From sequence record NC_061445.1: a stretch of DNA of 64,000 nucleotides. The stretch is one strand, 5' to 3'. Below, one piece after another: positions 23,038-58,863 of the stretch (its first letter is position 1; every line of letters begins with the position of its first letter). The notes under the pieces were generated by a model. The model was not told where the DNA came from and searched no databases. It saw nothing but the letters and a program-made list of their open reading frames with translations. The position numbers and the translations under genes were made by a program.

Positions 23038-23115
23038 GCAAATAACTGGTCAAAATAGCTCTTTATACGCACACGCGCCCGTGATACAATATATGCAGAC
23101 GCTACACAACGTAGC
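23038..23115 (+). promoter_or_regulatory. Composite early promoter element, copy 1
   Basis: CTGGTCAAAA 23046; TG-a-TACAAT 23085; GCTAC/GTAGC hairpin. Confidence 0.7.
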
Positions 23116-23143
23116 ACATACAACTAATGCTGAGGAGCATACA

Positions 23144-23470
23144 ATGAAAACTTACAACGCTGAGAACAAACACGAAATCGAAGAATTTGCGGCTGAGATC
23201 AACAAACGCATGAAGCGTACCGATGCGAAAGCAATCGTGACCAACGCCTACGCAGACGACGAGTTTTGTTTGATGGTTGTTGAGTGGGACGCAGAACTGA
23301 ATGAAGAAACTGGCGAGTGTGGTTACTTCATTGATATCCCGAGCGAAGACGGCGAGAAGCATCGCATCACTTATGCAGGTGTGCCTCACCCCGAAGATAA
23401 AGAGTACGTGTTCTACTTCGACATGTACGAAGAATTGATGCCTGAGATTGAACGTCTGAATCTCGCCTAA
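23144..23470 (+). CDS. Acidic hypothetical protein
   Basis: ATG 23144 after SD hairpin. Confidence 0.75.
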   Translation: MKTYNAENKHEIEEFAAEINKRMKRTDAKAIVTNAYADDEFCLMVVEWDAELNEETGECGYFIDIPSEDGEKHRITYAGVPHPEDKEYVFYFDMYEELMPEIERLNLA

Positions 23471-23548
23471 GCAAATATCTGGTCAAAAGCGCCGTTGCTT
23501 GAAAACGTGTGACGGCGTATTATGTAATCTCTAGCGCAATGACGCGCT
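23471..23548 (+). promoter_or_regulatory. Composite early promoter element, copy 2
   Basis: CTGGTCAAAA 23479; TTGCTT-17-TATTAT 23518; CGCCGT/ACGGCG dyad; AGCGC/GCGCT hairpin. Confidence 0.65.
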
Positions 23549-23572
23549 CAACACTGAAAGAGGCAACAAACA

Positions 23573-23812
23573 ATGGCTGAGAAACAAGTAGTTCTTGATC
23601 TGATCGCAGACGTAGCATCACCTACAGAAGTTATCTTCGAAGACGGTCAATCGTCTAATGAGTGGCTCGCACCGTACGATTTGCGCCTCACCGTGTCACT
23701 GCACACTGGCCCGAACGGCTACCCCGAAGTGAACATCATCGGCGATGAAGACGATCTGAAACGCTTCTTGTTTGAACACGACTTTGAAGGTTCAGTCGAA
23801 GACGTGAAGTAA
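23573..23812 (+). CDS. Acidic hypothetical protein
   Basis: 79-aa ORF with GAGG RBS. Confidence 0.7.
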   Translation: MAEKQVVLDLIADVASPTEVIFEDGQSSNEWLAPYDLRLTVSLHTGPNGYPEVNIIGDEDDLKRFLFEHDFEGSVEDVK

Positions 23813-23819
23813 GTTGTTT

Positions 23820-23848
23820 GAGCGGGGCTTCGGCCTCGCTTCTTTTAT
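23820..23848 (+). terminator. Intrinsic terminator
   Basis: GAGCGGGGC-TTCG-GCCTCGCTT plus T-tract. Confidence 0.7.
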
Positions 23849-23869
23849 TCTGCCGAAGAGAAAGTAACT

Positions 23870-24376
23870 ATGAAGAATCAATATCTCGTTATTCGCATGA
23901 GTGCCGTTGACATATACGACCGTACATTTCTAATGCGTGGCTTCAATATGAAGCGCATCGAAAAAGTTATCGGCGTTATCGCTGTCGTCGGTGAAGGTCT
24001 GCTGACTTCTGATTCTAAGATGTACCATCTGTCTCGCGTCAACATCGATCTGTTGGCGTCTGATACACAGCAGAGCTGGGGACGCCTGAGCTGGTCAAGC
24101 ATTGACGCCACGCTCATTGATTCTGGTATGCGCCGTCTGCCGCCAGAACTGCTTGATAGAATTAAGGCAATGCGCACTAATCGCATCTATTACGGCGTCG
24201 ATACGACGATACCAGAAGCGTTTCGTGACTGTCACACTGAGTTGGTGTATACGCCAAGCGCCGCTCGCAAGTTAGTAGATCGCGCCGAGAAACTTGCTGC
24301 GTTGAGTGAGTACAGCGTAGAAGATATTATCGCTCACCTGAAAACGCGCATTGAAGGCGTCACTATAGCTTTCTAA
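23870..24376 (+). CDS. Hypothetical protein
   Basis: 168-aa ORF. Confidence 0.65.
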   Translation: MKNQYLVIRMSAVDIYDRTFLMRGFNMKRIEKVIGVIAVVGEGLLTSDSKMYHLSRVNIDLLASDTQQSWGRLSWSSIDATLIDSGMRRLPPELLDRIKAMRTNRIYYGVDTTIPEAFRDCHTELVYTPSAARKLVDRAEKLAALSEYSVEDIIAHLKTRIEGVTIAF

Positions 24377-24438
24377 TCGTTATCTGACTGTGGCGTTACG
24401 GCGCCACGTACTTCACAACTTAATTGAGAGAACATGCC

Positions 24439-25053
24439 ATGAACCTCGTAACAACTTTCTTCGTCAAACGCTCTTACGCTTCACTCGCCGCTGGCAGTTT
24501 TGCAATCGACGCCAAACACGTTCAAGAGCTGATTGAATGTGAGTGCATGATCGTACACGTCGATACAGGCCATCGTAATGCGTTCGCCTTGAAGAACATC
24601 GCTCTGACGCCTATCGACGAGCACAACGTGCGCGTTACGTTCGACCCTCTGACAGACGCACACGCAATGCCGTCTTCTGTCATGCCGAAAGATCTGAAAG
24701 GCAGTATTCAAGTCTATGGCATGTACAGTGAAGATCTGAAAGACGTGCCACGCTTCGACGTGTCAAACGATGCGTCAGGCAACAACCCAAACATTCTGTC
24801 ACTTGATCTTGAATGCCGCCAGCGCCTGATGCAGTATCACGGTGGCATGTGTACGCTGACCGAACTGTGCCTGTCACTCTTTGAGAAAGGCATTCACATT
24901 GTCGATATTCATCACAACGTCAAACAGCACGATCACGGCGTCGGCGTTTTCACTCAGCGCTATCGCACTGCGTTTGAGCTGAACAAAGACAACGGCATTA
25001 AACGCCACAACGATGATTATCCAGTTCTGGCGCGTATGACTGTTTTAATGTAA
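24439..25053 (+). CDS. Hypothetical protein
   Basis: ATG 24439, in frame with the track ORF. Confidence 0.65.
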   Translation: MNLVTTFFVKRSYASLAAGSFAIDAKHVQELIECECMIVHVDTGHRNAFALKNIALTPIDEHNVRVTFDPLTDAHAMPSSVMPKDLKGSIQVYGMYSEDLKDVPRFDVSNDASGNNPNILSLDLECRQRLMQYHGGMCTLTELCLSLFEKGIHIVDIHHNVKQHDHGVGVFTQRYRTAFELNKDNGIKRHNDDYPVLARMTVLM

Positions 25054-25102
25054 ACACACAATGCCTCGCAACGTGCGGGGCTTTTTCTATTTGGAGAATG
25101 TT

Positions 25103-25363
25103 ATGGTATACGAACGCGAAGAACTTCAAGACATGCCGCTTGATGTGCTCTACCATCTGGCGTGCGCTAAAGGTCTGCTGGACGATCTCGACGATGAAGA
25201 CGATGTGCCTGATCGTGAAGTGCTGGTGGGCATGATTCTTGATGCGCAGAGCGAAGATGAACAGGCAGAACAAAACGCTGCCGACAAACAACGCGCCGAA
25301 GATGATCGCGATCCGCGTATCAATCGTCGTGATGGCCAAGACGGATCTGAGGACTACTGCTAA
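25103..25363 (+). CDS. Acidic protein with a two-helix (Rho-N/HeH-like) module
   Basis: ATG 25103 after GGAG; LQDMPLDVLYHLACAKGL...DREVLVGMI. Confidence 0.65.
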   Translation: MVYEREELQDMPLDVLYHLACAKGLLDDLDDEDDVPDREVLVGMILDAQSEDEQAEQNAADKQRAEDDRDPRINRRDGQDGSEDYC

Positions 25364-25581
25364 TGTCACCTACTGAACTGAATGAGTATGTTCACCTCGT
25401 ACTGACGCCTGTTGCTATGGCATGGCGCGAGCAATTCCCCAAAAAGAAACAAACGATTTGTACGATGAAGACGCCGTACTCTTGTCGTATCAAGTTCGTT
25501 GATGACCGTGAAGTTGAAAAAGCGTGGCAAGCATTCTGCCGCACACACGGTATCAAGAACGAAGAAACACTCGAAGTCTAA
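25363..25581 (+). CDS. Small hypothetical protein
   Basis: Coupled start. Confidence 0.6.
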   Translation: MSPTELNEYVHLVLTPVAMAWREQFPKKKQTICTMKTPYSCRIKFVDDREVEKAWQAFCRTHGIKNEETLEV

Positions 25582-25585
25582 ATTC

Positions 25586-25614
25586 AAGGGCTGCCATTGC
25601 TGGTGGCCCTTTTT
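25586..25614 (+). terminator. Intrinsic terminator
   Basis: AAGGGCTGCCA-TTGC-TGGTGGCCCTT plus T-tract. Confidence 0.7.
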
Positions 25615-25619
25615 CATTT

Positions 25620-25628
25620 CTGTAAATA
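25620..25628 (+). promoter_or_regulatory. CTGTAAATA candidate phage-sigma promoter
   Basis: Just after a terminator, about 33 nt upstream of ATG 25661. Confidence 0.55.
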
Positions 25629-25660
25629 CTCCGCACACTAACCACAACGCGGAACTTATA

Positions 25661-26029
25661 ATGCGCCGATTTGTACTCATCTTCAACGTCAGTCAGGAAG
25701 AACTAGATGACCGTCGTTTCTTTCAGGCAAAGCTCAACATTGTCTCATCACTGCGCCGCGCTCGCTGTGTGTTTCTCGTCGTGCGCGAGACAAAGCAGGT
25801 ACTCTGTGTCTCTGAGCTAACGTATCAACCAAGCGTCGAACCCGGCATTCGTCAGGTAGACTTCGACGCCCCGCGTGATGTGACCGCATACGTTCTGCCA
25901 TTCACCGAACTCACTACTGCTATGGTCAATAACTCGCAGGACCCAAGCATTCGCTACTTTGGCCGTCAGCTTGAAATGGATGCTGACCAGCTTAAACGTT
26001 TTCACACTCAACTGGAGATTGTCCCATGA
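25661..26029 (+). CDS. Hypothetical protein
   Basis: ATG 25661, in frame with the track ORF. Confidence 0.6.
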   Translation: MRRFVLIFNVSQEELDDRRFFQAKLNIVSSLRRARCVFLVVRETKQVLCVSELTYQPSVEPGIRQVDFDAPRDVTAYVLPFTELTTAMVNNSQDPSIRYFGRQLEMDADQLKRFHTQLEIVP

Positions 26030-26268
26030 GTCAGTCATTAGGCGCTTCACTTGGTGCTCGCTTCGCTGTTAGCTCTCAGGAGAATATTGAGCGCCGTAAG
26101 AAGCGTGACCCGAAGAACAAGACGCTGACCTGTGCTGGCACTACAGCGCAGTACAATGCTGTCGGTATGCTCGCTAACAAACTCGACGTGTCACGCTCGC
26201 GTGTCATTGAATTGGCAATCGAAGAACTGCTGGCGAAGCATGGTATTAAGGTTGAGAGTGATGAGTAA
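26026..26268 (+). CDS. Ribbon-helix-helix (CopG-like) DNA-binding protein
   Basis: LANKLDVSRSRVIELAIEELL helix pattern. Confidence 0.65.
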   Translation: MSQSLGASLGARFAVSSQENIERRKKRDPKNKTLTCAGTTAQYNAVGMLANKLDVSRSRVIELAIEELLAKHGIKVESDE

Positions 26269-26626
26269 CGATACGCATATCTTTTGCCGACTGTATGGCG
26301 TACAGCACCGACTGCGTATCATCGCATATAACTTCCTCAAACCTCAGCACATGATAACAGTCGATCCCTCTGACGTGCTCAAGATGATGCCTCGCATTAT
26401 GGTGGGAGCAGCATACGACACGTACACGCCGTACAAAGTGATCAAGGCGGGACGTGCTGACTTCAAAATCCGCCTGATAGAGCGCACTGATGCGAACGTG
26501 TGGCGCTACGTGTTCGAAGACTATCGAGGCAAGCTGTTTGAGACTTACTTAAATCGGAGAACGTATGATACAGCTGGGGACGATAACAGCGTTAAGTCTA
26601 AAAGACAAAGCGCCACGATCCACTGA
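26261..26626 (+). CDS. Hypothetical protein
   Basis: ATG 26261 overlaps upstream stop. Confidence 0.6.
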   Translation: MSNDTHIFCRLYGVQHRLRIIAYNFLKPQHMITVDPSDVLKMMPRIMVGAAYDTYTPYKVIKAGRADFKIRLIERTDANVWRYVFEDYRGKLFETYLNRRTYDTAGDDNSVKSKRQSATIH

Positions 26627-27200
26627 CATTGATATCACGCCCGTATCGAAAGACGAAGACTGGGGCTCATTGAGTCCCTTTCATCTCGGGCCGTGTCGCA
26701 CACCTGACGGTACGATGTTTCTCAACATGGAAAACTTGTGGCAGTACAGCAAGGTCTATGAAGACCACATCGTCAACTCGAATGATATCTTTCACGGTGA
26801 GATAAGCAGAGAGTGGTATGAGTGGCATCTCAAAGGTGCTGGCTCAAAACAGGCGCATCGCTATCCTATGGGGAAAGACCAAAAGGCTTTGTTCTCCAAA
26901 TGGGGCGACTTGCGCCTTTCTTACGTTTCAGCACGAAAACAAATCTACGTGCCGGAATATGCCAAGCTGGTAATCAATCAGCCGAAGTTCAAACGTCTGC
27001 TCAAGGAATATAAGAAAGGTGCGAAGATCGTTGTGCGCGATTATGACACCTACGATATTCTACGGGCCTACCCAAATGCTCGTAGCCCTTGGCTCGAAGC
27101 GATCAACAACCCGAACGCGAAGTTTGGTCACTCATTCGTGATTGCCCTCGCCCTGCTGTTTCACGACAGACCACTATGGTACAATCAATGGATAATCTAA
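26565..27200 (+). CDS. DUF6939-like protein, possibly NADAR-related
   Basis: IDITP...LSPF..G...NMENLWQYSKVY...ARKQIYVPEY pattern, as recalled for DUF6939; not searched. Confidence 0.45.
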   Translation: MIQLGTITALSLKDKAPRSTDIDITPVSKDEDWGSLSPFHLGPCRTPDGTMFLNMENLWQYSKVYEDHIVNSNDIFHGEISREWYEWHLKGAGSKQAHRYPMGKDQKALFSKWGDLRLSYVSARKQIYVPEYAKLVINQPKFKRLLKEYKKGAKIVVRDYDTYDILRAYPNARSPWLEAINNPNAKFGHSFVIALALLFHDRPLWYNQWII

Positions 27201-27505
27201 AGTATCTGGCTTGCATTGAACTGAGCACAAGAGAAGGTAATCTGAATCTACCTATCTTACCTAAGTGTGATATGCAGGCGTTTCTGCTGGACAGCCGTAC
27301 TAAAACGAAAGTGCCTATCAAGCTCAATGCCACAAACGTGGTGAAAGTCTGCGGCAAGACGTGTGGCAGCCTGCAATGGTTCGACTGCGTTAATCTGCTT
27401 ATTTGGTCGTCATTCGAGCCAGAGCGTTTCACGCTGTATATTGAGCGGACACTCAAAGCAGACGAGACAGCGCGCGCCCTGCAATCTGCTGAACTCTGCA
27501 AATAA
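27188..27505 (+). CDS. Hypothetical protein
   Basis: ATG 27188; stop lies inside promoter copy 3. Confidence 0.55.
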   Translation: MDNLKYLACIELSTREGNLNLPILPKCDMQAFLLDSRTKTKVPIKLNATNVVKVCGKTCGSLQWFDCVNLLIWSSFEPERFTLYIERTLKADETARALQSAELCK

Positions 27506-27570
27506 CTGGTCAAAATAGCCGTTCTGTTTAGTAGCTCGATATGATATACTAAGAGCGAGCGCTATTGCTC
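27498..27570 (+). promoter_or_regulatory. Composite early promoter element, copy 3
   Basis: CTGGTCAAAA 27506; TG-a-TATACT 27545; GAGC/GCTC hairpin. Confidence 0.7.
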
Positions 27571-27598
27571 AAAAACAACTAAAGCTGAGGAGCTTATC

Positions 27599-28039
27599 AT
27601 GACTACTACTTACAACATCGCTGATCTGAAAACCCCTGAAATGTTCGCAGATGCCCGCCTGGGTCACTTATCAGATTTCGCTGATAAACTTCGCGCTCTG
27701 CTGGGTCGTGAAGATATGTATCTGGAACTTGAAGCAGAAGAGGGTGCTGATATTTCAGACGTGTGCCCTGATGCAGATTCTGTTGTGGGGGACAATCTGA
27801 TCAACCTGCATATTCACTATGCAGATGACCCTGATCATGTAAGCGATAAGGGTGCATGGTACGCTTACTTAGCTTTCCCGCATGTTGAAAATCATTGGGG
27901 CGAGTGGACAAATAGTTTCATCCTGTTTGTCGAATCTAACGACGGGGATTTCCTTGAAGAGATCGCGTTCGAAAATGGCAACCCGAAAATGCTGTCTGAT
28001 ATTGTCGACCGCATTAACTACTGGTTCCCTGCCGAATAA
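27599..28039 (+). CDS. Acidic hypothetical protein
   Basis: 146 aa, SD hairpin upstream. Confidence 0.75.
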   Translation: MTTTYNIADLKTPEMFADARLGHLSDFADKLRALLGREDMYLELEAEEGADISDVCPDADSVVGDNLINLHIHYADDPDHVSDKGAWYAYLAFPHVENHWGEWTNSFILFVESNDGDFLEEIAFENGNPKMLSDIVDRINYWFPAE

Positions 28040-28086
28040 GTGATTTGTGTTGAGCATTCGCTGAGTGCTCAATGAAAATCCAAACA
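28040..28086 (+). repeat. Intergenic hairpin repeat, copy A
   Basis: GATTTGTG-TTGAGCATTC-GCT-GAGTGCTCAA-TGAAAATC. Confidence 0.75.
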
Positions 28087-28110
28087 ACACCCTAAGCTAA
28101 GGAGCTTAAC

Positions 28111-28428: not shown

Positions 28429-28472
28429 GATTTGTGAAGGGCATTCGCTGAGTGTCCTTTGAAAATCAAACA
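28429..28472 (+). repeat. Intergenic hairpin repeat, copy B
   Basis: GATTTGTG-AAGGGCATTC-GCT-GAGTGTCCTT-TGAAAATC. Confidence 0.75.
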
Positions 28473-28491
28473 CTGTTCTGAGGAGAACAAC

Positions 28492-28845: not shown

Positions 28846-28916
28846 TTGTTGCTCGCAGATTCTTACGAGAGTCTGCTGTCAACATAACCCAAAATACCTA
28901 AGCTGAGGAGCTTAAC

Positions 28917-29327: not shown

Positions 29328-29334
29328 ATAACAG

Positions 29335-29366
29335 GGATGCTCGCATAGGCGGGTGTCCCATTTTAC
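29335..29366 (+). terminator. Intrinsic terminator
   Basis: GGGATGCTCGC...GCGGGTGTCCC followed by ATTTT. Confidence 0.6.
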
Positions 29367-32982: not shown

Positions 32983-33383
32983 GTATGGATAAAACGTACA
33001 TGCGACATTGGGGATCACGTTACGTGAGGTCCTCATCTGGCAAGTGGTATTCAGTTCATGGACGTGAAGGAACGTGGGTAACGAATCGCTACGGCACATC
33101 ATTCTATCGTAGCGGGTCAGAAGTGTGGCGAGACATATCAGCCGCAGATCGTAGTGCGTTGGAACGAGAGTTAGTTTCCCGTACACGCAAAGACTTCAAA
33201 GACACTAAGCTCAAGTATAGCCACTGGGGCAAGATCGTCCTGACTATTGCGAGACAGTCAGAAGAAGAAAACAACCCACACACGTCAGAGCTAGCTGAGA
33301 TGCTTGAGTCGCTGAGACAGACTTTCTACGGACAGAAGGTACAGCAACTAAGCACAATATTGGACGAAATAGGGCTTAAATAG
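32979..33383 (+). CDS. Hypothetical protein
   Basis: 134-aa ORF; 3' end overlaps promoter copy 4. Confidence 0.6.
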   Translation: MSMDKTYMRHWGSRYVRSSSGKWYSVHGREGTWVTNRYGTSFYRSGSEVWRDISAADRSALERELVSRTRKDFKDTKLKYSHWGKIVLTIARQSEEENNPHTSELAEMLESLRQTFYGQKVQQLSTILDEIGLK

Positions 33384-33432
33384 TAGGCTCGTTTGTGATA
33401 CAATAGAGATGAACGCTAGACACTCGTTTAGC
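33352..33432 (+). promoter_or_regulatory. Composite early promoter element, copy 4 (variant box)
   Basis: TTGGACGAAAT 33360; TG-a-TACAAT 33399, 39 nt spacing. Confidence 0.6.
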
Positions 33433-33453
33433 TACTTACATGAGGATATGTAT

Positions 33454-36771: not shown

Positions 36772-37035
36772 ATGGCTGTAGGCTTTGTCAAAGATGATGG
36801 CGTCAACGATACCATCGAAACAAACGTGCTGAATGAGATCGACCGCGCTCGTTCAGAACTTCAAGGCGCAGGTTCTGATTACTGCGTCAACCCTGATTGC
36901 GGTGAGAAGATTCCTGTGATGCGTAAACTCGCTATGCCCAATGCGCGTTACTGCATCAACTGTCAGGCAGCGCACGACGGCACTGCTAACGTCGGCTATA
37001 ATCGCCGTGGCTCAAAAGATTCTCAACTGAGGTAG
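36772..37035 (+). CDS. DksA/TraR family C4 zinc-finger protein
   Basis: C..PDCGEKIP..RKLAMP.ARYCINCQ pattern, with N-terminal D...D acidic helix. Confidence 0.85.
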   Translation: MAVGFVKDDGVNDTIETNVLNEIDRARSELQGAGSDYCVNPDCGEKIPVMRKLAMPNARYCINCQAAHDGTANVGYNRRGSKDSQLR

Positions 37036-41588: not shown

Positions 41589-42569
41589 ATGAGACTTGGA
41601 TTCGCCTGTAAGCTGATTGACGCACAAGGCAAGCAACCGTACCCAAACAAAAGCATTAGCTACACGCACTTTGCAAAACTCGATCTCGACCAGCGTCGTC
41701 AAAAGCTACTCGACATTGTGACCGTCAACCTGACGTCACTGTACGATATGATCGCACACGTTGCGATGTTACGCCGAGACATGCGCATGTTTCGTATCAC
41801 CAGCGAATTGCTCCCGCTGTTCACGCACCCACAAGTTGCGCACTTATACCAAGAGCGTGAACTTGCCGCGCACATCGAACACTGGTTGTGGAAGTGCGGT
41901 ACGTTAGCTCAGTCATCTGGCGTTAGACTTTCGTTTCACCCAGGTCAGTTTACCGTGCTCGCATCTGATCGACCTGACGTTGTGCTCAATTCAATCCACG
42001 AACTTGAGTACCATGCGTACTGCGCCTATCACATGGGGTACGGTCGACGCTTTCAAGACTTCAAGATCAACATTCACCTGTCTGGTCGTCTTGGTGCTAA
42101 AGGCTTTCGTGCTGCACACTCAAAACTTTCTGATCACTGCCGAAAGATGTTGACCGTTGAGAACGACGAGATCACGTCCAGCATTGAGGACTGTCTTGAG
42201 CTTGCGGACATTTGCCCGATTGTGCTCGATATTCATCATCACTGGGTAATGACTAACGAGTACATACAGCCGACCGATGATCGTGTGCAACGTGTCATTG
42301 AGTCGTGGCGAGGCATTACACCGACAGCGCATTACTCTGTGTCTAAGCCTGAGTTCGTGCCGTCGCGTGGTCTGCCAGATCAAAACAAGCTGACTGCTAA
42401 TCGAATGCAGCTACGCGCACACTCTGACTACTACCACAACGATGACGTAAACGAGTGGGCCCTCAGCTTCACTGATTTTGACTTAATGTGCGAGTCGAAA
42501 GCGAAGAATCTCGCTCGTGCAAAATTGGCGTGTTTTACAGCGAACTCTGCAAATAACTGGACAAAATAA
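41589..42569 (+). CDS. uvsE: UV-damage endonuclease (UvsE/UVDE)
   Basis: RLGFAC, FRITSELLP, RLSFHPGQF, LTVEND, LDIHHH, AHSDY and MCESKAK motifs. Confidence 0.9.
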   Translation: MRLGFACKLIDAQGKQPYPNKSISYTHFAKLDLDQRRQKLLDIVTVNLTSLYDMIAHVAMLRRDMRMFRITSELLPLFTHPQVAHLYQERELAAHIEHWLWKCGTLAQSSGVRLSFHPGQFTVLASDRPDVVLNSIHELEYHAYCAYHMGYGRRFQDFKINIHLSGRLGAKGFRAAHSKLSDHCRKMLTVENDEITSSIEDCLELADICPIVLDIHHHWVMTNEYIQPTDDRVQRVIESWRGITPTAHYSVSKPEFVPSRGLPDQNKLTANRMQLRAHSDYYHNDDVNEWALSFTDFDLMCESKAKNLARAKLACFTANSANNWTK

Positions 42570-42622
42570 GGCTTGTTTCTGATGGTTGCCCTATGATACA
42601 CTGTTTATGAGCACTTTTGCTC
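42549..42622 (+). promoter_or_regulatory. Composite early promoter element, copy 5
   Basis: CTGGACAAAA 42557; TG-a-TACACT 42597; GAGCA/TGCTC hairpin. Confidence 0.7.
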
Positions 42623-42649
42623 GTTATAACTAGACAGAGGAAATAGACA

Positions 42650-44788: not shown

Positions 44789-45977
44789 TCTGAATGAACT
44801 GTCTGTGGCCGCTCGTCGTCTGTTTGCTAACGGTGATGCTCATGTGCGTGATGCGCTTCGTGCCGTAGCAAACACGGTTATCGCAGACTCTGCTCGATTC
44901 AAGTATGAGTTCTCCGAGCCTGCTGTCGAGTCTGTCTATCGTACTCTCGAAAGTCTGACGTTCTCAGGTGACGGTACGTTGCTTCTGCCCGCAGATGAAA
45001 TTTATGCGTTTGACCAGCTTCTGAACAAGAAGTACCGCGACAACTTCTACTCGTCTGTGTGCAACGTTGCGTTCACTCAACGGCAAACCAACCCGCGTAC
45101 TTCAATGCTCGAAGCGTTCCCGCGCAGCAACGAATACATGTGCGAAATTCTGGCTCGCGCATTTGTGTGGGTGCTGATGCAGACTGGACTGGATAATCTT
45201 CTGGTAAAAGATTGCATCGTTGCTGGTCACACGCGTCTGCCGCAATTCATTATTGCGTTGCAGACAGAAGGTCAAGACGAAGGCTACACCAGCCTGTTCT
45301 CGCTATTCAACCCACTGTCCGATGATTATCAGGTAGTGTCTGCTACAAACTTCTTCCCAGAAGAATACCGTAAGCAGTTGCTGGCAGAAGCTACAGGGAA
45401 TCTGCCGCCTGAGTACCGAGAAGTTGACAACATGACATTCGAACAACTCGGTGCGCTGTTGACTCGTCTTAACTTGGTAGGCCCAGCGTCTGCTAAGAAG
45501 AAATATCGCTGTGGTTGTGAAGGTGATTGCGAAGATGATTGCGATGCGTCTGGCTCCTCTTACAATAACCTTGAAGACTTCGATGACGCCAGCGATCTGC
45601 GTGACGTCTTCTACAACCACTACGGTTGGCCTGACGACGATATCGAAATTGACGACTCTCTGTGGGTAACTGGTAAGTCGAAGATGAAAGTCAACATCGA
45701 CATTCCGGTAGTAACTCTTGCCGAACCTAAAGCTGCGAAAGAGCGTGGCTACAGGTCTAAAAAGATGCCGAAGAAAGCTATGGCTAAGTCCGGCACTCGT
45801 ATTGAACTGGACTACACCCAACAACTGTGGCATCCGGTAACTCTCGATACCGAAGGCGCGAATCGCGTGTTTGCTATCACTCTCGTTTCTCGTCACACGT
45901 CTGGTGTCAATCGCGCAGTAGCTACTGCCCGTGAAGCGTTCGCAATTGCCGCCGTACTTGCTGATCTTGACAAATAA
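44781..45977 (+). CDS. Hypothetical protein with acidic Cys-containing linker
   Basis: ATG 44781 after AGGAG; CGCEGDCEDDCD. Confidence 0.7.
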   Translation: MSDLNELSVAARRLFANGDAHVRDALRAVANTVIADSARFKYEFSEPAVESVYRTLESLTFSGDGTLLLPADEIYAFDQLLNKKYRDNFYSSVCNVAFTQRQTNPRTSMLEAFPRSNEYMCEILARAFVWVLMQTGLDNLLVKDCIVAGHTRLPQFIIALQTEGQDEGYTSLFSLFNPLSDDYQVVSATNFFPEEYRKQLLAEATGNLPPEYREVDNMTFEQLGALLTRLNLVGPASAKKKYRCGCEGDCEDDCDASGSSYNNLEDFDDASDLRDVFYNHYGWPDDDIEIDDSLWVTGKSKMKVNIDIPVVTLAEPKAAKERGYRSKKMPKKAMAKSGTRIELDYTQQLWHPVTLDTEGANRVFAITLVSRHTSGVNRAVATAREAFAIAAVLADLDK

Positions 45978-46045
45978 CTGGACAAACTAGCGCTTCGATT
46001 TGAGGCGCTTTTCTGCTATAATAGCAGCTAGAGCAATATAGCTCT
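45970..46045 (+). promoter_or_regulatory. Composite early promoter element, copy 6
   Basis: CTGGACAAAC 45978; AGCGCTTC/GAGGCGCT dyad; TG-c-TATAAT 46017; AGAGC/GCTCT hairpin. Confidence 0.75.
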
Positions 46046-46089
46046 CAACGTCATTTTTAACTATACGTTTATCACGGGAAACTTTTATA

Positions 46090-49994: not shown

Positions 49995-49998
49995 AACA

Positions 49999-50029
49999 AA
50001 CGGGAGACCTTAACTGGTTTCCCGTTTTT
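49999..50029 (+). terminator. Intrinsic terminator
   Basis: ACGGGAGACC...GGTTTCCCGT plus T-tract. Confidence 0.7.
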
Positions 50030-50054: not shown

Positions 50055-51005
50055 ATGACAATGACAAAGACTGCTACCTTCCCGTGGAAAAGTGCCGACC
50101 ATCGTAACGTGGATTTCGCACTGCGTATCAACAAACTGAATCTGATGGAAACGTGGAACTACGTTAAGGCTAATAACAAGCCTGACGCAGAAGGTGACGC
50201 GCTTCTATCCATGATGCACTACCACTCTACCGAGCACATGCGTCAGGTAACAGTGATTGCTCTCTGGTTGTTAGAGCGTGAGTCAGAACAAGCATGGCAG
50301 TATGACGTCGGTGCGTTACCTCTGGCAGTCGCGTGTATGTTCCACGACATGAATCACTCGCTCGGTAAAACTGACGACGAGCAGAACGTGGCCGTAGCCC
50401 AAGAGGCATTCAAGCAGTATCTCACTGTTACCGAAGATCAGCGTATCATCGATCAACAGGACATTATTCTTGAGCTGATCAAAATCACTCAATTCCCGTA
50501 CTCGGGGACACGTCAGCCGAAGAATCTTGTCGAGCGCTGCATCCGTGATGCGGATATCCTGTACGGTATGCAGGAAGATGTTATCGACTATGTAATGTTT
50601 TCGCTTCGCCGTGAACTGAATCGTCGTCCGAAAACTTCTACGTTGAAGTATGACCGAGAGCAGTGGGCAGCAATGCGCATTGACTTCCTGTTCTCAATCG
50701 AAATCTATACGCCGACAGCCGAAGCAATCATGGGCTGGGAGTTGTCTTCGACCAACGACAATAGCCACGAAGATAAATTGCAGGTGTGGGTGAGCGATGA
50801 CCCTGTGTTCTACGTTACCACCGCAAATGCGTTGAAAGCGAATGACGTGTTGTTTATCGACACGCCAGAAGACGCAACGACGAAGCGCCGTCTGATCGAG
50901 CGCATTACAGACATGGGTGTTGGCTTCAACATCTATTTCAATGACGGTGACTCGCTTCATCTGCGCAACGGTGAGAAGTGCGTAGCAGTCGAAAGACGCA
51001 AATAA
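50055..51005 (+). CDS. HD-domain metal-dependent phosphohydrolase with small C-terminal domain
   Basis: YHSTEH, CMFHDMNH and IRDADI motifs. Confidence 0.8.
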   Translation: MTMTKTATFPWKSADHRNVDFALRINKLNLMETWNYVKANNKPDAEGDALLSMMHYHSTEHMRQVTVIALWLLERESEQAWQYDVGALPLAVACMFHDMNHSLGKTDDEQNVAVAQEAFKQYLTVTEDQRIIDQQDIILELIKITQFPYSGTRQPKNLVERCIRDADILYGMQEDVIDYVMFSLRRELNRRPKTSTLKYDREQWAAMRIDFLFSIEIYTPTAEAIMGWELSSTNDNSHEDKLQVWVSDDPVFYVTTANALKANDVLFIDTPEDATTKRRLIERITDMGVGFNIYFNDGDSLHLRNGEKCVAVERRK

Positions 51006-51064
51006 TAGGCTGAAATCGCCGTACTGTCTAAAGTGCGTTTATGCTACAATATGCGTAGACGCAC
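50998..51064 (+). promoter_or_regulatory. Composite early promoter element, copy 7 (degenerate box)
   Basis: GCAAATAATAGGCTGAAAT; TG-c-TACAAT 51045 at 39 nt; TGCG/CGCA hairpin. Confidence 0.55.
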
Positions 51065-51082
51065 TAACAAAGAGAAAACGAT

Positions 51083-52641: not shown

Positions 52642-52642
52642 C

Positions 52643-53221: not shown

Positions 53222-53268
53222 TCTATCAATAGCGGCAGCGCTCACGGGTGCTGCACAGGAGAAACATT

Positions 53269-54915: not shown

Positions 54916-54950
54916 TCGTCTAACCATACCTAACATTGTAGGGAATCAAA

Positions 54951-55403
54951 ATGAAAGAGAAAAATATTCTGGTACTGAATCGTGTTCGCCTCGTTATGGA
55001 AGATATGCTCGTTGAGCAATTCGCTGACTTGGCCCGTGAAGACCAAGAACGTGCAGGCGACCTGAGCGTTATCATGCTGTCTAAGATTCAGCAGGGTGTT
55101 AACGCTATGCTGGCGAACGGTAACCCAGAAGCATGTTGTCGTGCTGATGTTGCGTGGACAGAATGCTCGTTCTTATCGACGACTGGTCTGTTCGTGATTG
55201 CATCGTCTGCCGATGCTGAGGTGCTCAATCACTTTGAAGACTCGGACTATCTATGCCACATACGGGCTATCGAGCACTTCGCAAAAGAAGCTGGCTTCAA
55301 GTTCACTGTTGAGCCTATTCGTGTAGCGTTTCCATTCGAGAGCACGATCATCCCAGAAGCTCTGCGCTACGTGCCACCTACAGATAACTTGACTAAGCGC
55401 TAA
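54951..55403 (+). CDS. Hypothetical protein
   Basis: 150-aa ORF. Confidence 0.65.
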   Translation: MKEKNILVLNRVRLVMEDMLVEQFADLAREDQERAGDLSVIMLSKIQQGVNAMLANGNPEACCRADVAWTECSFLSTTGLFVIASSADAEVLNHFEDSDYLCHIRAIEHFAKEAGFKFTVEPIRVAFPFESTIIPEALRYVPPTDNLTKR

Positions 55404-55407
55404 AACA

Positions 55408-55487
55408 GCAAAAATCTGGACAAAATGAGGGTAGTATGCGAAACTGCCCTATGCTATAATAGAAGCGTAGCATGTGCTACGCTTTCT
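55408..55487 (+). promoter_or_regulatory. Composite early promoter element, copy 8
   Basis: CTGGACAAAA 55416; AGGGTAGT/ACTGCCCT dyad; TG-c-TATAAT 55455; AAGCGTAGC/GCTACGCTT hairpin. Confidence 0.8.
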
Positions 55488-55511
55488 AACGTATGTCTGA
55501 GGAGACAAATC

Positions 55512-55973
55512 ATGCAAGAGCATAAAGCAACCCCGGCCGATATCGAACTGCAAGATCGTATGATGGAAGCGGGTGTCCAGCGCATCATCGAATTGAAACC
55601 TGAGTGGATCGACGTTTGTACTGCGGGCCTTCGTTTGTACCTGACCGTGTGCGATCAAATCGGCGGTCCGATTCCTGAACTGCGTTTCGTCCATAACAGC
55701 AAACCTTGTCGCATTCAATTCAACTTGAACGAATCGGCAGAAGGTACCGAGTTCACTGCGAACGATATCGATCACGAAAAGCAAATGGCAATATGTGATG
55801 CCATTCTTGATGTGGCCGACGCGAACGAAGATGGCCACTCGCTGTTAGACCTTGCCATTTGTTCTGGTCGCCTGTTCATGATTGGTTATGACGGGCTTGC
55901 GGGTACGGTTGAGAAAGTTTGCTTCCGTTTCGCCAAGAAGAACTACACAATGAATCTGGTCAAAGGTGAATAA
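55512..55973 (+). CDS. Hypothetical protein
   Basis: ATG 55512 after SD hairpin. Confidence 0.7.
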   Translation: MQEHKATPADIELQDRMMEAGVQRIIELKPEWIDVCTAGLRLYLTVCDQIGGPIPELRFVHNSKPCRIQFNLNESAEGTEFTANDIDHEKQMAICDAILDVADANEDGHSLLDLAICSGRLFMIGYDGLAGTVEKVCFRFAKKNYTMNLVKGE

Positions 55974-56664
55974 CATGAAACTCTCGCCAACTATGTTGAA
56001 ACGCAGCAAGCTAAACCCTGATGTGTTTGCGCTTGTTCGTGAAGGTGAAGTGCTGTCCTCATTCAAACCGAGCAAGCTCTTTGCGGCGCTCAATGCCGTT
56101 GTTAAAGACAGCGGGCTGAAAGAAGTCGATATCGTGTGGCGTGACGGTACGCGCACTGTAGAACATCTCATTGTTCACCACACGCGCAAGCTAGTATCGA
56201 CTGACACAATCATGAACTACTACAACGTGTGCCTGATGCTTCGCGCTCAAGGCGCTGCTGCTAGTCTGTCTACGCCTGTAGACATTCGTACTATGTTTGA
56301 TTCGAACGGGCCTCTGATTAGCGAGATTCACATTGACCCTGAAATCGTCGATAAGCTGGTGGAAGCACTTACACCCAAGCACCCTATGTTTGCAGACGCG
56401 CACGGCATCGAAGAAGATGATGATATGTTCGATGATGACGACGATTATGACCCTGATGATGACTTCGACGATGAGGATTATCTCTCCGAAGATATCTCAC
56501 CAGAAGAAGATCGTCTGAGCATTAGCGCTTGGGGATATCGCGCCGAAGACTGGACGACTACTTTGACGGACGACGATATTCAGGAAGTGCATAGCCTCGA
56601 AGTGGGTATTGACCCTGACATTGAATTGCCACTCGCACCTGACGCGAAGGACAAATACTTCTAA
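55966..56664 (+). CDS. Hypothetical protein with acidic C-terminus
   Basis: 232-aa ORF. Confidence 0.65.
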   Translation: MNNMKLSPTMLKRSKLNPDVFALVREGEVLSSFKPSKLFAALNAVVKDSGLKEVDIVWRDGTRTVEHLIVHHTRKLVSTDTIMNYYNVCLMLRAQGAAASLSTPVDIRTMFDSNGPLISEIHIDPEIVDKLVEALTPKHPMFADAHGIEEDDDMFDDDDDYDPDDDFDDEDYLSEDISPEEDRLSISAWGYRAEDWTTTLTDDDIQEVHSLEVGIDPDIELPLAPDAKDKYF

Positions 56665-56855
56665 TGAAAAGCACTAACGAACTGGTCAAAGAATTGAAGC
56701 AGCGCGGCGAGCTTATTATTGACGAGCGAAACAAAGACATGCTGCCTGATTTGACATTCACGCTTGATTGCATGTGTATCACCTACAAGAAGCGGGAAGT
56801 AGAAACAACTAAGCGCGGCCGCGTTGTCAGAATCAAACTGACCAGTATTCACTGA
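56664..56855 (+). CDS. Small basic protein
   Basis: Coupled start. Confidence 0.55.
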   Translation: MKSTNELVKELKQRGELIIDERNKDMLPDLTFTLDCMCITYKKREVETTKRGRVVRIKLTSIH

Positions 56856-56994
56856 TGTTCTCTTTGGCCCGACTGCCCAGCGATGCTCATCCCCCAGAAG
56901 AGGTGCCTCGCGCAGAGGCATGGCAGTTCGGGTCCTTTTTGAAGCGCACTTGCGAGTACGCTGCATAAAGTAAAAACAAACAGGAGGCTGTTGA

Positions 56995-57456
56995 ATGAAA
57001 TTCACCGAAGTAAGTAAAGATGCACAGGTCATTCTCATGGGTTCCGCACTTGCGGGAGTTATCGAAGTGTTTGGCCGCGATGCCGATGACGGCGGGCGCA
57101 AGCTGCTGATTACTGCATTGAATCAGATTGGCCTGACGCCTGACGAGTTCAAGGCTCTGATCAACAACATGACAATTTCAGTCAGGGCAGAAGTTGGTGC
57201 AGTGCGTGTGCTCGAAGCAGATCCGGACGATGACTTCGAAGAAGACGCCGAAGACTTCGGTGCCTGTGCTGAGTGCGATCGTCCAGTAGAAGATTGCGTG
57301 TGTGACGATGAAGACGACGACCTCGATACGTCAGAGCAACGTCCAGGCAATCTGAACGATGACGGTCGGACAGACGAAAATGGCTGGCAGAATCTCGATG
57401 AAGATGCCGTCTGCCGTGTATGCCACCAACAAGTGTGTGAGTGCCGAGGCTACTGA
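56995..57456 (+). CDS. Acidic protein with two CxxC...CxC motifs
   Basis: CAECDRPVEDCVC and CRVCHQQVCEC; SD hairpin upstream. Confidence 0.7.
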   Translation: MKFTEVSKDAQVILMGSALAGVIEVFGRDADDGGRKLLITALNQIGLTPDEFKALINNMTISVRAEVGAVRVLEADPDDDFEEDAEDFGACAECDRPVEDCVCDDEDDDLDTSEQRPGNLNDDGRTDENGWQNLDEDAVCRVCHQQVCECRGY

Positions 57457-57668
57457 TGAGCAGACCGACACAAGACGAAATCAATGGTCAGATAGCTGCC
57501 TCCGAAGAGCAACGCTATAACGAGCAGATCGCTCAATACGATGACTGGACAGACGACGAGCTGGCTGATGCTGTAGAAGCAAACGAGCTTGTGGGTGAAG
57601 ACGAAGACGCAAGCGACTACAGCCGCGAAGCGCTGATTCGAATGCTGCTGGCGGATCGACGATTCTAA
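57456..57668 (+). CDS. Small acidic protein, essentially one Rho-N/HeH-like module
   Basis: YDDWTDDELADAVEANEL...YSREALIRML. Confidence 0.65.
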   Translation: MSRPTQDEINGQIAASEEQRYNEQIAQYDDWTDDELADAVEANELVGEDEDASDYSREALIRMLLADRRF

Positions 57669-57750
57669 GCAAAAATCTGGACAAAATGAGGGTTGTCTCA
57701 AAACAGCGCCCCTGATACAATATAAAGACAGCGAGACATGTTCTCTCTGT
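57669..57750 (+). promoter_or_regulatory. Composite early promoter element, copy 9
   Basis: CTGGACAAAA 57677; TTGTCT-17-TACAAT 57716 with TG extension. Confidence 0.75.
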
Positions 57751-57900
57751 TATGTGCCTATAACGTTTTGACCGTGTGTTTATCTTTTCCCGGGCACACG
57801 GTCCTTTTTAAAGTCGCTTCGATGAGGCTGCTTTAAAAAGGGTTCAATACCCTTTGAGCGCACCGGGCTTTACGCGGTTTCCGCCTTGTGTGCTCTCATG
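57727..57900 (+). ncRNA. Candidate structured leader or small RNA
   Basis: About 190-nt ORF-free stretch with five successive inverted repeats; no family recognised. Confidence 0.35.
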
Positions 57901-57922
57901 CTAAACCGCAAAGGAAATAGAT

Positions 57923-58735
57923 ATGCCAAACTTACGTGCTAAACCAGAAGACAAATTCTCTAAAGCTCGTTCTGCGAAGAACTCACCTGAACGTCAGGCT
58001 GCTGCTGAGAAGAAACGCACAACCCCACGCGGTCCGTCTTCTGCTAAACCTCGTCAGTTGCCGCCGGGCTATGGCTATAAGTCAAAAGCTACAGGCGAAC
58101 GTGCGCCAGAGCGTGACGATAAAGAGTCCCAGAAACCTGATTTGAGTAAGAAAGACTGGGTTGCTCGTCGTGACGCAACGCCGAAGATGCGTGATGAAGA
58201 ACGTGTATTCAATCTCGTTCACGCAATTCTGGCTGCATGGAAAGCGGATATCGGACACGCCGAACATACGGCAGCATCTTCTGGTATCATCAAAGTGTCT
58301 CGTCGTAAAGTTGAAGGCGCATTGCGCGATCTCAAGAATACGCGCTTCACTAAAATCCCAACGCTCATCAATGAAATTCTCACACACTCTGATGTGTGTG
58401 AGGAATTCGGGATGTGGGTGTACGTCGAGCACGACACGCCGGATTGGATCTTCGTGCGTCTGCCTGAAGACAGCACGCCTGTGCTTCGCGCTGATATCGT
58501 CTACGACCGCACAGGTCAAACTGCTACGACGATCACGACTTCGAGTGAACCGCTGCTTGAAGTCTTAGGGGAAGACGACGAGCCAGAAATGCTCGAATGC
58601 AATGAGCGCGATATTGAAGACCTTGAAACTAAGGCAATGCGCAAAGAGCTGATCGACAAGGGCATCATCAAGCCAGAAGCTGCTGATAAGCTGAGTCGAC
58701 CGGATCTGATGAAGCTGTTAGCGTACTACGCATAA
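57923..58735 (+). CDS. Protein with basic disordered N-terminus and C-terminal Rho-N/HeH-like module
   Basis: 270 aa with AAGGA RBS. Confidence 0.75.
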   Translation: MPNLRAKPEDKFSKARSAKNSPERQAAAEKKRTTPRGPSSAKPRQLPPGYGYKSKATGERAPERDDKESQKPDLSKKDWVARRDATPKMRDEERVFNLVHAILAAWKADIGHAEHTAASSGIIKVSRRKVEGALRDLKNTRFTKIPTLINEILTHSDVCEEFGMWVYVEHDTPDWIFVRLPEDSTPVLRADIVYDRTGQTATTITTSSEPLLEVLGEDDEPEMLECNERDIEDLETKAMRKELIDKGIIKPEAADKLSRPDLMKLLAYYA

Positions 58736-58774
58736 GCAATAACGAGCAGGGCGCTGAAATATAGCTGCCCTGCT

Positions 58775-58863
58775 ATCTGCGAAGTATGCAGAAAACTGGA
58801 CAAAATCGTGGTTGTTATCTGACAGCCACCTATGCTACAATATATGCAGACGCAGTGAGCGTC
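58775..58863 (+). promoter_or_regulatory. Composite early promoter element, copy 10
   Basis: CTGGACAAAA 58796; GTGGTTGT/ACAGCCAC dyad; TG-c-TACAAT 58836; GACGC/GCGTC hairpin. Confidence 0.8.

Follow-up and report, generated by a model that had tools for sequence, protein, structure and literature searches.

The early genes of phage T4 are preceded by a repeated, information-rich class of promoters, described as 'UP/-35/TGn/-10' (Hinton 2010, PMC2988021), in which the upstream (UP) element is located at ~-40 to -60 (PMC2988021). In T4-like phages, promoter-stem-loop (PeSL) cassettes combine a repeated sigma70-type early promoter with a stem-loop, a Shine-Dalgarno (SD) sequence and a start codon (Arbiol 2010, PMC2839356; Comeau 2014, PMC4122927), the stem-loop, a terminator, being placed just upstream of the promoter's A/T-rich region and -35 (PMC4122927). 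Here we describe an arrangement that recalls both systems in a stretch of 64,000 nucleotides from sequence record NC_061445.1 (the window), which is 100% identical to positions 186001-250000 of the genome of Erwinia phage pEa_SNUABM_3 (Alexandravirus, 266,175 bp; window position = genome position - 186,000). Inspection of the letters alone had led to the original prediction that the window holds ten copies of a composite promoter cassette with a conserved upstream box, a fixed spacing to the -10 hexamer and hairpins of variable sequence. Our analysis, for which the whole 266-kb genome was read and not just the window, reveals 12 such cassettes at conserved sites and suggests that they are early promoters used by the host RNA polymerase, the box of which may be read by a protein of its own.

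Scanning of the genome with a two-block position weight matrix (PWM) yielded 12 cassette copies with scores of 31.7-63.5 bits, the next best match scoring -5. As the PWM was trained on these 12 copies, their high scores are circular, which does not apply to the empty gap beneath them. All ten predicted copies were found again at their places, including two degenerate ones (boxes starting at 33353 and 50999), and a relaxed whole-genome scan detected two extra copies (K and L) just beyond the window at genome positions 257510 and 261597. The 12 copies are all on the + strand between genome 209 and 262 kb, in an ORFan-rich early region, and each is followed by a start codon with an SD sequence 26-195 nt past the predicted +1. 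The box consensus CAAAWAWCTGGWCAAAA has eight matches at 0-1 mismatch in the window, all on the + strand; when up to three mismatches are allowed, 1.27 matches are expected, and eight were reached in 0 of 100 shuffles. As predicted, the distance from the box start to the first base of a TAnnnT hexamer is 46-47 nt, or 39-40 nt when counted from CTGG, in 10/10 window copies, and the TG of an extended -10 is present in nine of them (11 of the 12 genome copies), the exception being site B (23472) with GCG. When the search was turned around, 15 TGNTAYAAT sites were found in the genome, comprising nine with a box, five boxless sites inside genes and one boxless intergenic site (genome 178417), and every intergenic TGNTAYAAT site that faces a gene belongs to the cassette class. 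Since generic -35/-10 matches are at chance level (21 vs 22.2 expected; 27 vs 20.1 expected), the cassette is the sole sigma70-like promoter class of this genome. The window copies are listed below in window coordinates, the terms interval hairpin, 5' hairpin and SD hairpin denoting hairpins between box and -10, near the predicted +1 and at the SD sequence, respectively.

23032..23143, + strand, cassette A: 61.4 bits (PWM); box 23039-23055; TGA and TACAAT 23082-23090; predicted +1 ~23097; 5' hairpin 23101-23115; SD hairpin tgCTGAGGAGca 23128-23139; ATG of gp251 23144; no interval hairpin; separate upstream terminator 22940-22968
23465..23572, + strand, cassette B: 31.7 bits; box 23472-23488; interval hairpin 23490-23517 (-13.2 kcal/mol, z -2.9); weakest core, GCG and TATTAT (23518-23523); predicted +1 ~23530; 5' hairpin 23533-23548; ATG of gp252 23573
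27492..27598, + strand, cassette C: 63.5 bits, best copy; box 27499-27515, including the TAA stop of gp261; TGA and TATACT 27542-27550; predicted +1 ~27557; 5' hairpin 27557-27570; SD hairpin 27583-27594; ATG of gp262 27599; no interval hairpin
33346..33453, + strand, cassette D: 58.4 bits; degenerate box CACAATATTGGACGAAA 33353-33369, within the 3' end of gp273; TGA and TACAAT 33396-33404; 5' hairpin 33415-33432 (z -2.6); ATG of gp274 33454
42543..42649, + strand, cassette E: 62.4 bits; box 42550-42566, within the 3' end of gp290 (UvdE endonuclease); TGA and TACACT 42594-42602 (spacing 47); 5' hairpin 42609-42622; ATG of gp291 42650
45964..46089, + strand, cassette F: 47.3 bits; box 45971-45987, including the TAA stop of gp297; interval hairpin 45989-46009 (z -3.1), then TTTTC; TGC and TATAAT 46014-46022; 5' hairpin 46030-46045; ATG of gp298 46090
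50992..51082, + strand, cassette G: 49.0 bits; degenerate box CAAATAATAGGCTGAAA 50999-51015, including the TAA stop of gp306; TGC and TACAAT 51042-51050; no 5' hairpin; ATG of gp307 51083
55402..55511, + strand, cassette H: 55.0 bits; box 55409-55425; interval hairpin 55428-55450 (z -3.2); TGC and TATAAT 55452-55460; hairpin 55462-55485 (-15.2 kcal/mol, z -3.9) across the predicted +1 (55467); SD hairpin 55494-55506; ATG of gp314 55512
57663..57922, + strand, cassette I: 53.2 bits; box 57670-57686; TGA and TACAAT 57713-57721; predicted +1 ~57728; 5' hairpin 57728-57750; 195-nt structured leader with a terminator-like hairpin (~57770-57803 and T run); ATG of gp319 57923
58782..58901, + strand, cassette J: 59.6 bits; box 58789-58805; interval hairpin 58808-58829 (z -4.1); TGC and TACAAT 58833-58841 (spacing 47); 5' hairpin 58849-58863; SD hairpin 58883-58896; ATG of gp320 58902

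The anatomy of the cassette was derived from a logo of 56 copies, i.e. the 12 copies of pEa_SNUABM_3 and 11 orthologous sites each from phages SNUABM_33, AD1, SNUABM_30 and SNUABM_22. In the numbering used here the hexamer occupies -12 to -7; its TA at -12/-11 and its T-7 were selection criteria (56/56), and T-35 and W-34 were not selected on. The core reads T-17 R-16 T-15 G-14 n TAYAAT A-6, that is the full TRTGn extended -10 motif (T-17 in 45/56 copies, R-16 in 51, T-15 in 52, G-14 in 50, A-9 in 51 and A-6 in 42). The -35 match had originally been described as often poor. It is vestigial indeed, but T-35 (55/56) and W-34 (54/56) are nearly universal without having been selected on, revealing a real -35 remnant at the canonical 17-bp spacing. 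At the predicted start, 7 nt after the hexamer, position -1 is a pyrimidine in 49/56 and +1 a purine in 46/56 copies, and positions +3 to +6 favour ACGC. The proposal of a sigma70-type early promoter class is thus supported by the TRTGnTAYAAT core, T-35 at 17 bp, Y-1/R+1 and the restriction of the cassettes to the ORFan-rich + strand block, and it appears highly probable that the core is a TGn/-10 promoter for host sigma70.

The upstream element comprises 25 bp, from -65 to -41, with the consensus AAcTmwGCAaAwAAyTGGwCAAAAT and a core box at -58 to -42. An upstream extension that had been noticed in four copies turned out to be more general, as AAcTmwG (-65 to -59) is kept in most of the 56 copies. 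Positions C-58, A-57, G-49, G-48 and A-43 are invariant (56/56), and the box alone contains 26-47 bits of information. Two conserved blocks, GCAnA (-59 to -55) and GGWCAAAA (-49 to -42), lie one helical turn apart, and G/C dinucleotides at -59/-58, -49/-48 and -39/-38 alternate with A-tracts in a 10-bp period; the box can also be read as two 12-bp half-repeats, AACTcTGCAAAT and AACTGGACAAAA. Coding constraint can be ruled out as the cause of its conservation because the five boxes that overlap 3' ends of upstream ORFs do so in differing frames and the other seven boxes are intergenic.

Several other readings of these sequences were tried and rejected. TGGACA within the box does not represent a displaced -35, as it is 32 bp away from the -10, is accompanied by no -10-like element at 17 bp and is always TGGTCA in Yoloswagvirus; extrusion of a hairpin that would shorten the spacer to 17 bp is ruled out as well because the hairpins take ~23 nt, leaving 9. 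A sigma54-type -24/-12 promoter is excluded by the GG-GC distance, which is 9 and not 11, and by a GC that is not invariant. A search with the marbox consensus AYnGCACnnWnnRYYAAAY at up to two mismatches returned 20 matches vs 16.9 expected, none of them on a cassette in + orientation. Comparisons with the consensus sequences for Fis, IHF, CRP, LexA and the Pho box, to be taken as leads only, showed no apparent fit.

Conservation follows the proposed functional parts. Between paralogous copies, identity amounts to 0.72 in the box and 0.70 in the core, as compared to 0.38 in the spacer, 0.30 in the initial transcribed region and 0.24 in the upstream flank; between orthologous copies the corresponding values are 0.85, 0.85, 0.71, 0.81 and 0.57. 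Orthologous cassettes are also better conserved than the end of the preceding gene. These comparisons indicate that purifying selection acts on box and core. Concerted evolution of the copies is ruled out since orthologues are closer to each other than paralogues in every segment; judged from these identities, the copies are old and reside at fixed sites without recent homogenisation.

Eleven orthologous cassette sites are present in each of SNUABM_33, Dickeya phage AD1, SNUABM_30 and SNUABM_22, Alexandravirus relatives with 70-84% nucleotide identity to the window in the early block. In three further genera, for each of which 50 kb of the equivalent block was read, we found ten cassettes in Snuvirus SNUABM_7, seven in Yoloswagvirus, all with the core GGTC, and ten in Salmondvirus JA29 with the consensus CAAATnnnTGTCCAAAA, the hexamer starting 46 nt after the box start in all three cases. 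Conservation of the box at the same spacing in related genomes, on which the original prediction hinged, is thus seen in four Alexandravirus relatives and in three other genera. The core of the box is TGGWC in Alexandravirus, Snuvirus and Yoloswagvirus and TGTCC in Salmondvirus, and AD1 and JA29, which represent these two types, share Dickeya solani MK10 as the host on which they were isolated. JA29 has much weaker hexamers (TATCCT, TAGACT, TAAGAT and similar), a correctly spaced TG is often missing, there is no T at -35, and two box-bearing promoters have CTGTAAAnT as their -10. A 30-nt box query retrieved 63 phage records, of which 43 were from Erwinia and 8 from Dickeya phages, the rest being scattered chance matches. 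Scanning of IMG/VR for the exact box gave at least 118 loci, nearly all of them single chance matches, and among the matches listed the exact box together with an extended -10 occurred in Erwinia phage genomes only.

The interval between box and -10 had been reported to hold an inverted repeat in at least six copies, with mismatches that are mostly G-T, and the hairpins had been regarded as structure-selected. Folding reveals a strong interval hairpin (-41 to -16) at four sites, B, F, H and J, where energies of -11.6 to -13.2 kcal/mol (z -2.9 to -4.1) fall in the top 1% of windows across the genome, and a moderate one at D, G, I and K; in the window, the hairpins thus beat chance individually only at the former four sites. 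Across relatives, the hairpin is retained at B, F and J, whereas the one at H is found in pEa_SNUABM_3 only; to regard the interval hairpins of the class as a whole as structure-selected is an overstatement. At site B, the 5' arm GCGCCRT pairs in the relatives with three differently placed 3' arms, and the folding energy remains unchanged despite these shifts (-13.2 to -13.8 kcal/mol in five genomes), which is good evidence of selection on structure. Owing to G-U pairs, the + strand RNA of the interval hairpins folds 3-5 kcal/mol better than the - strand RNA, so that the G-T mismatches seen earlier point to RNA. As the interval segment lies upstream of the start, this strand asymmetry argues that the hairpin acts as RNA in transcripts coming from upstream and not on the promoter. 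Located in a part of the promoter that polymerase does not contact, it is probably a facultative element that terminates the transcripts of the preceding unit or protects their 3' ends; the hairpin at F, with nine pairs and a T run, was flagged as terminator-like, and at the other sites the A/U-rich -10 would serve as its tail. Hairpins upstream of the box are present at A (22940-22968) and J (58745-58775) only, among the 12 copies.

The second hairpin, predicted right at +1 in nearly all copies, is present in nine of the ten window copies, and 44 of the 56 copies carry a hairpin that starts at +1 to +5. Among relatives its stem columns vary less (33%) than loop (64%) and flank (56%), and several of the changes in the stems are G-U-neutral. 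Site I of SNUABM_30 and SNUABM_7 has another hairpin in its place. A role as terminator, RNase III site or boxB-like antitermination site is ruled out by the lack of a T run, by stems of 4-8 bp and by variable loops. It is best read as a 5'-terminal stem-loop that would protect the mRNA.

The cassettes lie in a block of ~57 kb (genome 209-266 kb), in which every gene is on the + strand. The genes are mostly small and without recognisable family: in Pfam, the 74 early-block proteins account for eight families, namely UvdE, Tpt1, dUTPase, SLT, radical SAM with a 4Fe-4S companion domain, a DksA/TraR zinc finger and a domain of unknown function. No RNA polymerase is annotated in the genome, and no polymerase domain was detected in the nine largest proteins tested, which is absence and not proof. 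Early timing of the cassettes is suggested because the downstream genes are ORFans, because the phage has a sigma-factor gene and these nine proteins revealed no polymerase domain, and because a second promoter-like motif, ATCTGTAAATA (described below), serves replication and other genes on both strands.

On this basis we favour the following scenario. The cassettes would be the early promoters of the phage, used by host RNA polymerase with sigma70, which would recognize the core through the extended -10 (T-17, TG at -15/-14, TAYAAT) and the vestigial -35 across a 17-bp spacer and would initiate at a conserved pyrimidine/purine step located 7 nt past the hexamer. The 25-bp box would activate from upstream and be recognized in a fixed helical register; its ligand would be a sequence-specific protein, either made by the phage or delivered with the virion, that contacts polymerase in the manner of a class I activator; the A-tracts of the box, located where polymerase alpha subunits dock on UP elements with their C-terminal domains (alpha-CTDs), may contact alpha-CTD too. 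The short stem-loop at +1 to +5 would probably shield the 5' end of the transcript from decay, and at some sites the spacer hairpin may work as RNA on incoming transcripts, which it would terminate or protect at their 3' ends, the A/U-rich -10 forming its tail. The one-base tolerance of the box-hexamer distance and the single orientation suggest a direct, stereospecific contact with polymerase. A specific reader is suggested because the most strongly conserved positions of the box are G/C pairs, on which the UP consensus for alpha-CTD places no requirement, because the box alone carries so much information, because the box cores of AD1 and JA29 differ on the same host, and because JA29 keeps the box next to much weaker -10 hexamers that often lack a properly spaced TG. 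Our preference for this scenario as a whole, with a dedicated box reader that contacts polymerase, is a tentative one and amounts to a slight lean over a pure UP element. A bolder version, in which the box is the site of a phage-specific factor, possibly delivered with the DNA, that docks host polymerase on -35-poor promoters from near -50 and has co-evolved across at least four jumbo-phage genera, strikes us as doubtful.

The pure UP element would be an information-rich one, the A-tracts of which, near -54 and -43, are bound by two alpha-CTDs without any extra protein, with the G/C pairs setting shape or bending; we consider this possible, if rather unlikely. The box at -58 to -42 (extended, -65 to -41) falls in the UP window of ~-40 to -60, and T4 early promoters, too, have a consensus beyond the standard elements, referred to as 'uber UP/-35/TGn/-10' (PMC2988021). 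G/C dinucleotides and A-tracts alternate every 10 bp, immediate-early promoters must function with the unmodified host enzyme, no DNA-binding protein was found in the early block by Pfam, and the pairing of the JA29 box with two kinds of -10, including CTGTAAAnT, fits a reader that is independent of sigma. The UP consensus is reported to be NNAAAWWTWTTTTNNNAAANNN. Compared by eye with this sequence, AAAWAW (-57 to -52) and AAAA (-45 to -42) of the logo fit and coincide with its best-conserved parts (as reported; Estrem 1998/1999), but agreement is limited to ~8/14 specified positions, and the distal T-tract is replaced by an invariant TGGW. Moreover, the invariant positions are G/C, disfavoured in minor-groove reading by alpha-CTD, the core of the box differs between two phage lineages on one host strain while being invariant within each, and the JA29 core promoters look too weak for help by an UP element alone. 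We regard it as very improbable that the cassettes are instead read by the phage sigma factor or an otherwise phage-modified polymerase, which would make them middle rather than early promoters. Such a factor is encoded (gp243, window 13450-14487; phrog_17569, E = 1e-157), one or two are reported for PaBG relatives (PMC7412058), and JA29 has non-canonical -10 hexamers. However, the core agrees with the sigma70 extended -10 consensus at each base, T-17 and A-6 among them; the box, 32 bp from the -10, is beyond the reach of any sigma region 4; ATCTGTAAATA, which occurs on both strands and 43 nt before the sigma gene itself, is the better candidate; and some promoter must act before any phage protein, with no other sigma70-like class being present.

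It was also considered that the cassettes serve above all as PeSL-like modules for recombination, the conserved parts of which provide short homologies for insertion, loss and swapping of early genes and would thereby be kept alike, in line with the definition of PeSLs as early promoter, stem-loop and SD cassettes at indels (PMC4122927). Some breakpoints agree with this view: homology of pEa_SNUABM_3 to SNUABM_33 and AD1 ends at 23149, at the start of gp251 after cassette A, and resumes at 23516 at the -10 of cassette B, and the gene in between encodes 108 amino acids here vs 234 in SNUABM_33 and AD1, with 38% identity over 110 amino acids. Likewise, gp262 looks inserted after cassette C with a hairpin-linker-SD module on both sides, homology to SNUABM_33 and SNUABM_30 begins again at 55407, with the start of box H at 55409, SNUABM_30 lacks gp319, which lies between I and J, and some copies are alike beyond their functional elements (K/L 0.51, H/I 0.49). 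However, of ~38 block ends in the comparison of pEa_SNUABM_3 with SNUABM_33, four lie within cassettes vs ~1.5 expected, and most breaks are at ordinary gene boundaries. Orthologous cassettes occupy the same 11 sites in five genomes and are closer to orthologues than to paralogues, and a pattern in which no more than 25 + 12 bp are conserved and the spacer is free is predicted by function and not by gene conversion. We therefore hold recombination to be an improbable main role; it could possibly add to promoter function and would not exclude it.

Several points weigh against the reading that we favour, i.e. early promoters with a dedicated box reader and functional hairpins. Pfam detected no DNA-binding or helix-turn-helix domain in the 74 early-block proteins, so that there is no candidate for the box reader. 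A factor made by the phage could not act on the first promoters unless it was injected with the DNA, and the A-tracts at -57 to -52 and -45 to -42 do fit the two alpha-CTD subsites. As to the hairpins, the one in the interval is absent at A, C, E and L among the 12 folded copies, and the one at +1 is lacking at G. A hairpin starting at +1 to +5 was found in 9/12 copies vs 24% of background windows (binomial P = 3e-4), in a test that was designed after looking at the data. The energy of the +1 hairpins is ordinary for the genomic background (percentiles 0.15-0.4; 49% G+C genome), and one clear compensatory change was seen, from A-T to G-C in the 5' hairpin stem of site E. Finally, a search of the literature found nothing on promoters of Alexandravirus or AD1, on transcription in this phage group or on the motif strings.

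Almost every intergenic gap of at least 45 nt in the early block contains a strong stem-loop, and many of these stem-loops are canonical intrinsic terminators that follow the first gene or the first two genes in a unit. Examples from the window are listed here.

22940-22968, terminator
23820-23841, terminator
25063-25081, terminator
25586-25611, terminator
29334-29359, terminator
49998-50027, terminator
60528-60552, terminator

As several genes behind terminators (e.g. gp253-gp256) are without a cassette of their own, the block looks like a series of short immediate-early units, behind which lie genes that depend on read-through or on a promoter of another type, which suggests control of delayed-early genes by read-through or antitermination. 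The second promoter-like motif, ATCTGTAAATA, has 33 copies in the genome at up to one mismatch (+ strand, 22; - strand, 11). Most of them precede the start codons of replication and other genes by 30-60 nt, and several are inside genes; one copy lies 43 nt before the sigma-factor gene gp243 and another one 9 nt upstream of box L. The motif is likewise present in Salmondvirus, Yoloswagvirus and Snuvirus. It likely marks promoters of a middle or late class, which the phage sigma factor may recognize. Its window copies are as follows.

2427, + strand, ATCTGTAAATA copy
13407, + strand, ATCTGTAAATA copy
18878, + strand, ATCTGTAAATA copy
25618, + strand, ATCTGTAAATA copy
39620, + strand, ATCTGTAAATA copy
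43880, + strand, ATCTGTAAATA copy
6981, - strand, ATCTGTAAATA copy

Eight early genes, with start codons 5-8 nt downstream, carry an SD hairpin of the form nnnCT(G/A)AGGAGn'n'n', which constitutes the 3' end of cassettes A, C, H and J. In all eight, three to four extra complementary flanking pairs are present and covary (tg/ca, aag/ctt, gtt/aac, tgt/aca, ata/tat), whereas among the 14 other CTRAGGAG sites of the genome at least three such pairs occur in none and two pairs in one. The SD hairpins recall, as a lead, the GGAG sites of T4 early mRNAs that are cut by RegB. Their positions are given below.

23128-23139, SD hairpin
27583-27594, SD hairpin
28094-28107, SD hairpin
28475-28488, SD hairpin
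28900-28913, SD hairpin
55494-55506, SD hairpin
58883-58896, SD hairpin
63941-63954, SD hairpin

Two gaps without a promoter (28040-28110 and 28429-28491) share a series consisting of GATTTGTG, a hairpin with the conserved loop region CATTCGCTGAGTG, GAAAATC, an A/C-rich linker and an SD hairpin. The leader downstream of cassette I (57728-57922, 195 nt) folds into extensive structure (-68.4 kcal/mol, z -5.1) and exceeds the neighbouring genes in conservation. It contains a terminator-like hairpin, GACCGTGTG...CACACGGTC followed by TTTTT, ~40-90 nt from the predicted start, and a hairpin with a T-loop-like sequence, AAGGG TTCAATA CCCTT, in which relatives have TTCGATA; in SNUABM_30 there is no gene between this leader and cassette J. 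The leader is a candidate for a small RNA or an attenuator. Searches with the covariance models of Rfam 15 gave no gathering-score match in the whole window and no more than chance-level matches around cassette I, and a search for tRNA and tmRNA genes with ARAGORN had no match.

Further observations concern the surroundings of the cassettes. The early-block protein gp279 (window 36772-37035) is a C4 zinc-finger protein of the DksA/TraR type (PF01258, E = 4.9e-9) that is kept in AD1, JA29 and Yoloswagvirus, and it likely binds the secondary channel of host polymerase during early infection. AD1 and SNUABM_33 have an XRE-like gene with no counterpart in pEa_SNUABM_3. Dense runs of GAAGAAGAAGA and GACGAAGACGA repeats are present at genome 245.8-246.4, 250.9-252.9 and 255.0-255.4 kb (window ~59800-60400 and beyond), inside several + strand genes (gp320, gp325, gp328 and others), where they encode long acidic stretches rich in Glu and Asp. 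Outside the window, the boxless site at genome 178417 (+) is a lone extended -10, TGTTACAAT, in the gap after the clamp-loader gene and before gp210; it points away from the surrounding - strand genes and is followed by an unannotated gap of 469 nt (genome 178664-179132), from which a small unannotated transcript could possibly originate.

Taken together, our data provide a first promoter map for a group of phages with ~260-kb genomes, which includes candidates for biocontrol of fire blight as well as Dickeya phages: 12 early transcription units in the present genome, the ATCTGTAAATA class for other genes and clear terminators. They also pose the question whether host polymerase alone reads a G/C-marked upstream element or whether a new early activator is at work. 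The interleaving of promoter, terminator and 5' stem-loop is a compact design, which could be reused in synthetic constructs for enterobacteria.

Stem-loops at the 5' terminus reportedly stabilise bacterial and phage mRNAs, as in the case of the ompA 5' untranslated region. The +1 hairpins resemble such elements in having a stem of 4-8 bp that starts within 0-4 nt of the predicted 5' end and a sequence that varies at a fixed position; they differ in that the 5' ends are predicted ones and in that similar hairpins also precede SD sites in gaps without promoter. N4-type promoters, in which a phage-encoded single-subunit enzyme, the virion RNA polymerase, reads a DNA hairpin of conserved sequence at the start site, differ from the cassettes: the hairpin sequences of the cassettes vary between copies, and no polymerase domain was detected in the nine largest proteins tested. 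The box as such resembles the sites of class I activators (e.g. the marbox of MarA/SoxS/Rob and the P2 Ogr site near -55), which are asymmetric, ~20 bp long, composed of two blocks one helical turn apart and placed upstream of a poor -35 at fixed distance and orientation. However, the marbox consensus is without match on the cassettes in the right strand and the spacing of the cassette blocks is 2 bp longer, the dyad of the P2 Ogr site is missing from the box, and no activator is known or predicted for the cassettes. A phage-specific factor of the kind discussed above would be a counterpart of promoter marking by T4 MotA, but for the earliest genes and upstream of the -35.

The comparison with PeSLs that had been drawn at the outset, with the caveat of a different architecture, is apt in kind. 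Both are repeated early promoters with stem-loop, SD sequence and start codon between small ORFans in a variable region, and some indels and replacements end at cassettes. However, the stem-loop of PeSLs immediately precedes an A/T-rich region and a good -35, whereas in the cassettes one hairpin, where present, is nested between box and -10 and a second one sits at +1; PeSLs are without a sequence-specific box and belong to a different phage lineage, and shuffling by the cassettes is anecdotal (A/B, C, H, I/J), with no significant enrichment. The T4 early promoters likewise share with the cassettes a repeated, information-rich layout before early genes, a TGn together with a TATAAT-like -10, and a conserved -40 to -60 region with A/T tracts near -42 and -52. 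In contrast to T4, the -35 of the cassettes is reduced to T-35/W-34, and their upstream element, rather than being simply A/T-rich, has invariant G/C positions (GCA at -59 to -57, GG at -49/-48, C at -46) and differs between phage lineages that share a host, in an unrelated group of jumbo phages. Thus, the cassettes represent a sound regulatory annotation and not a new kind of system, and would come as a surprise only if the box had its own protein; in comparison with all these systems, a G/C-marked box at -58 to -42 common to four genera and an RNA hairpin nested within a promoter spacer are both undescribed.

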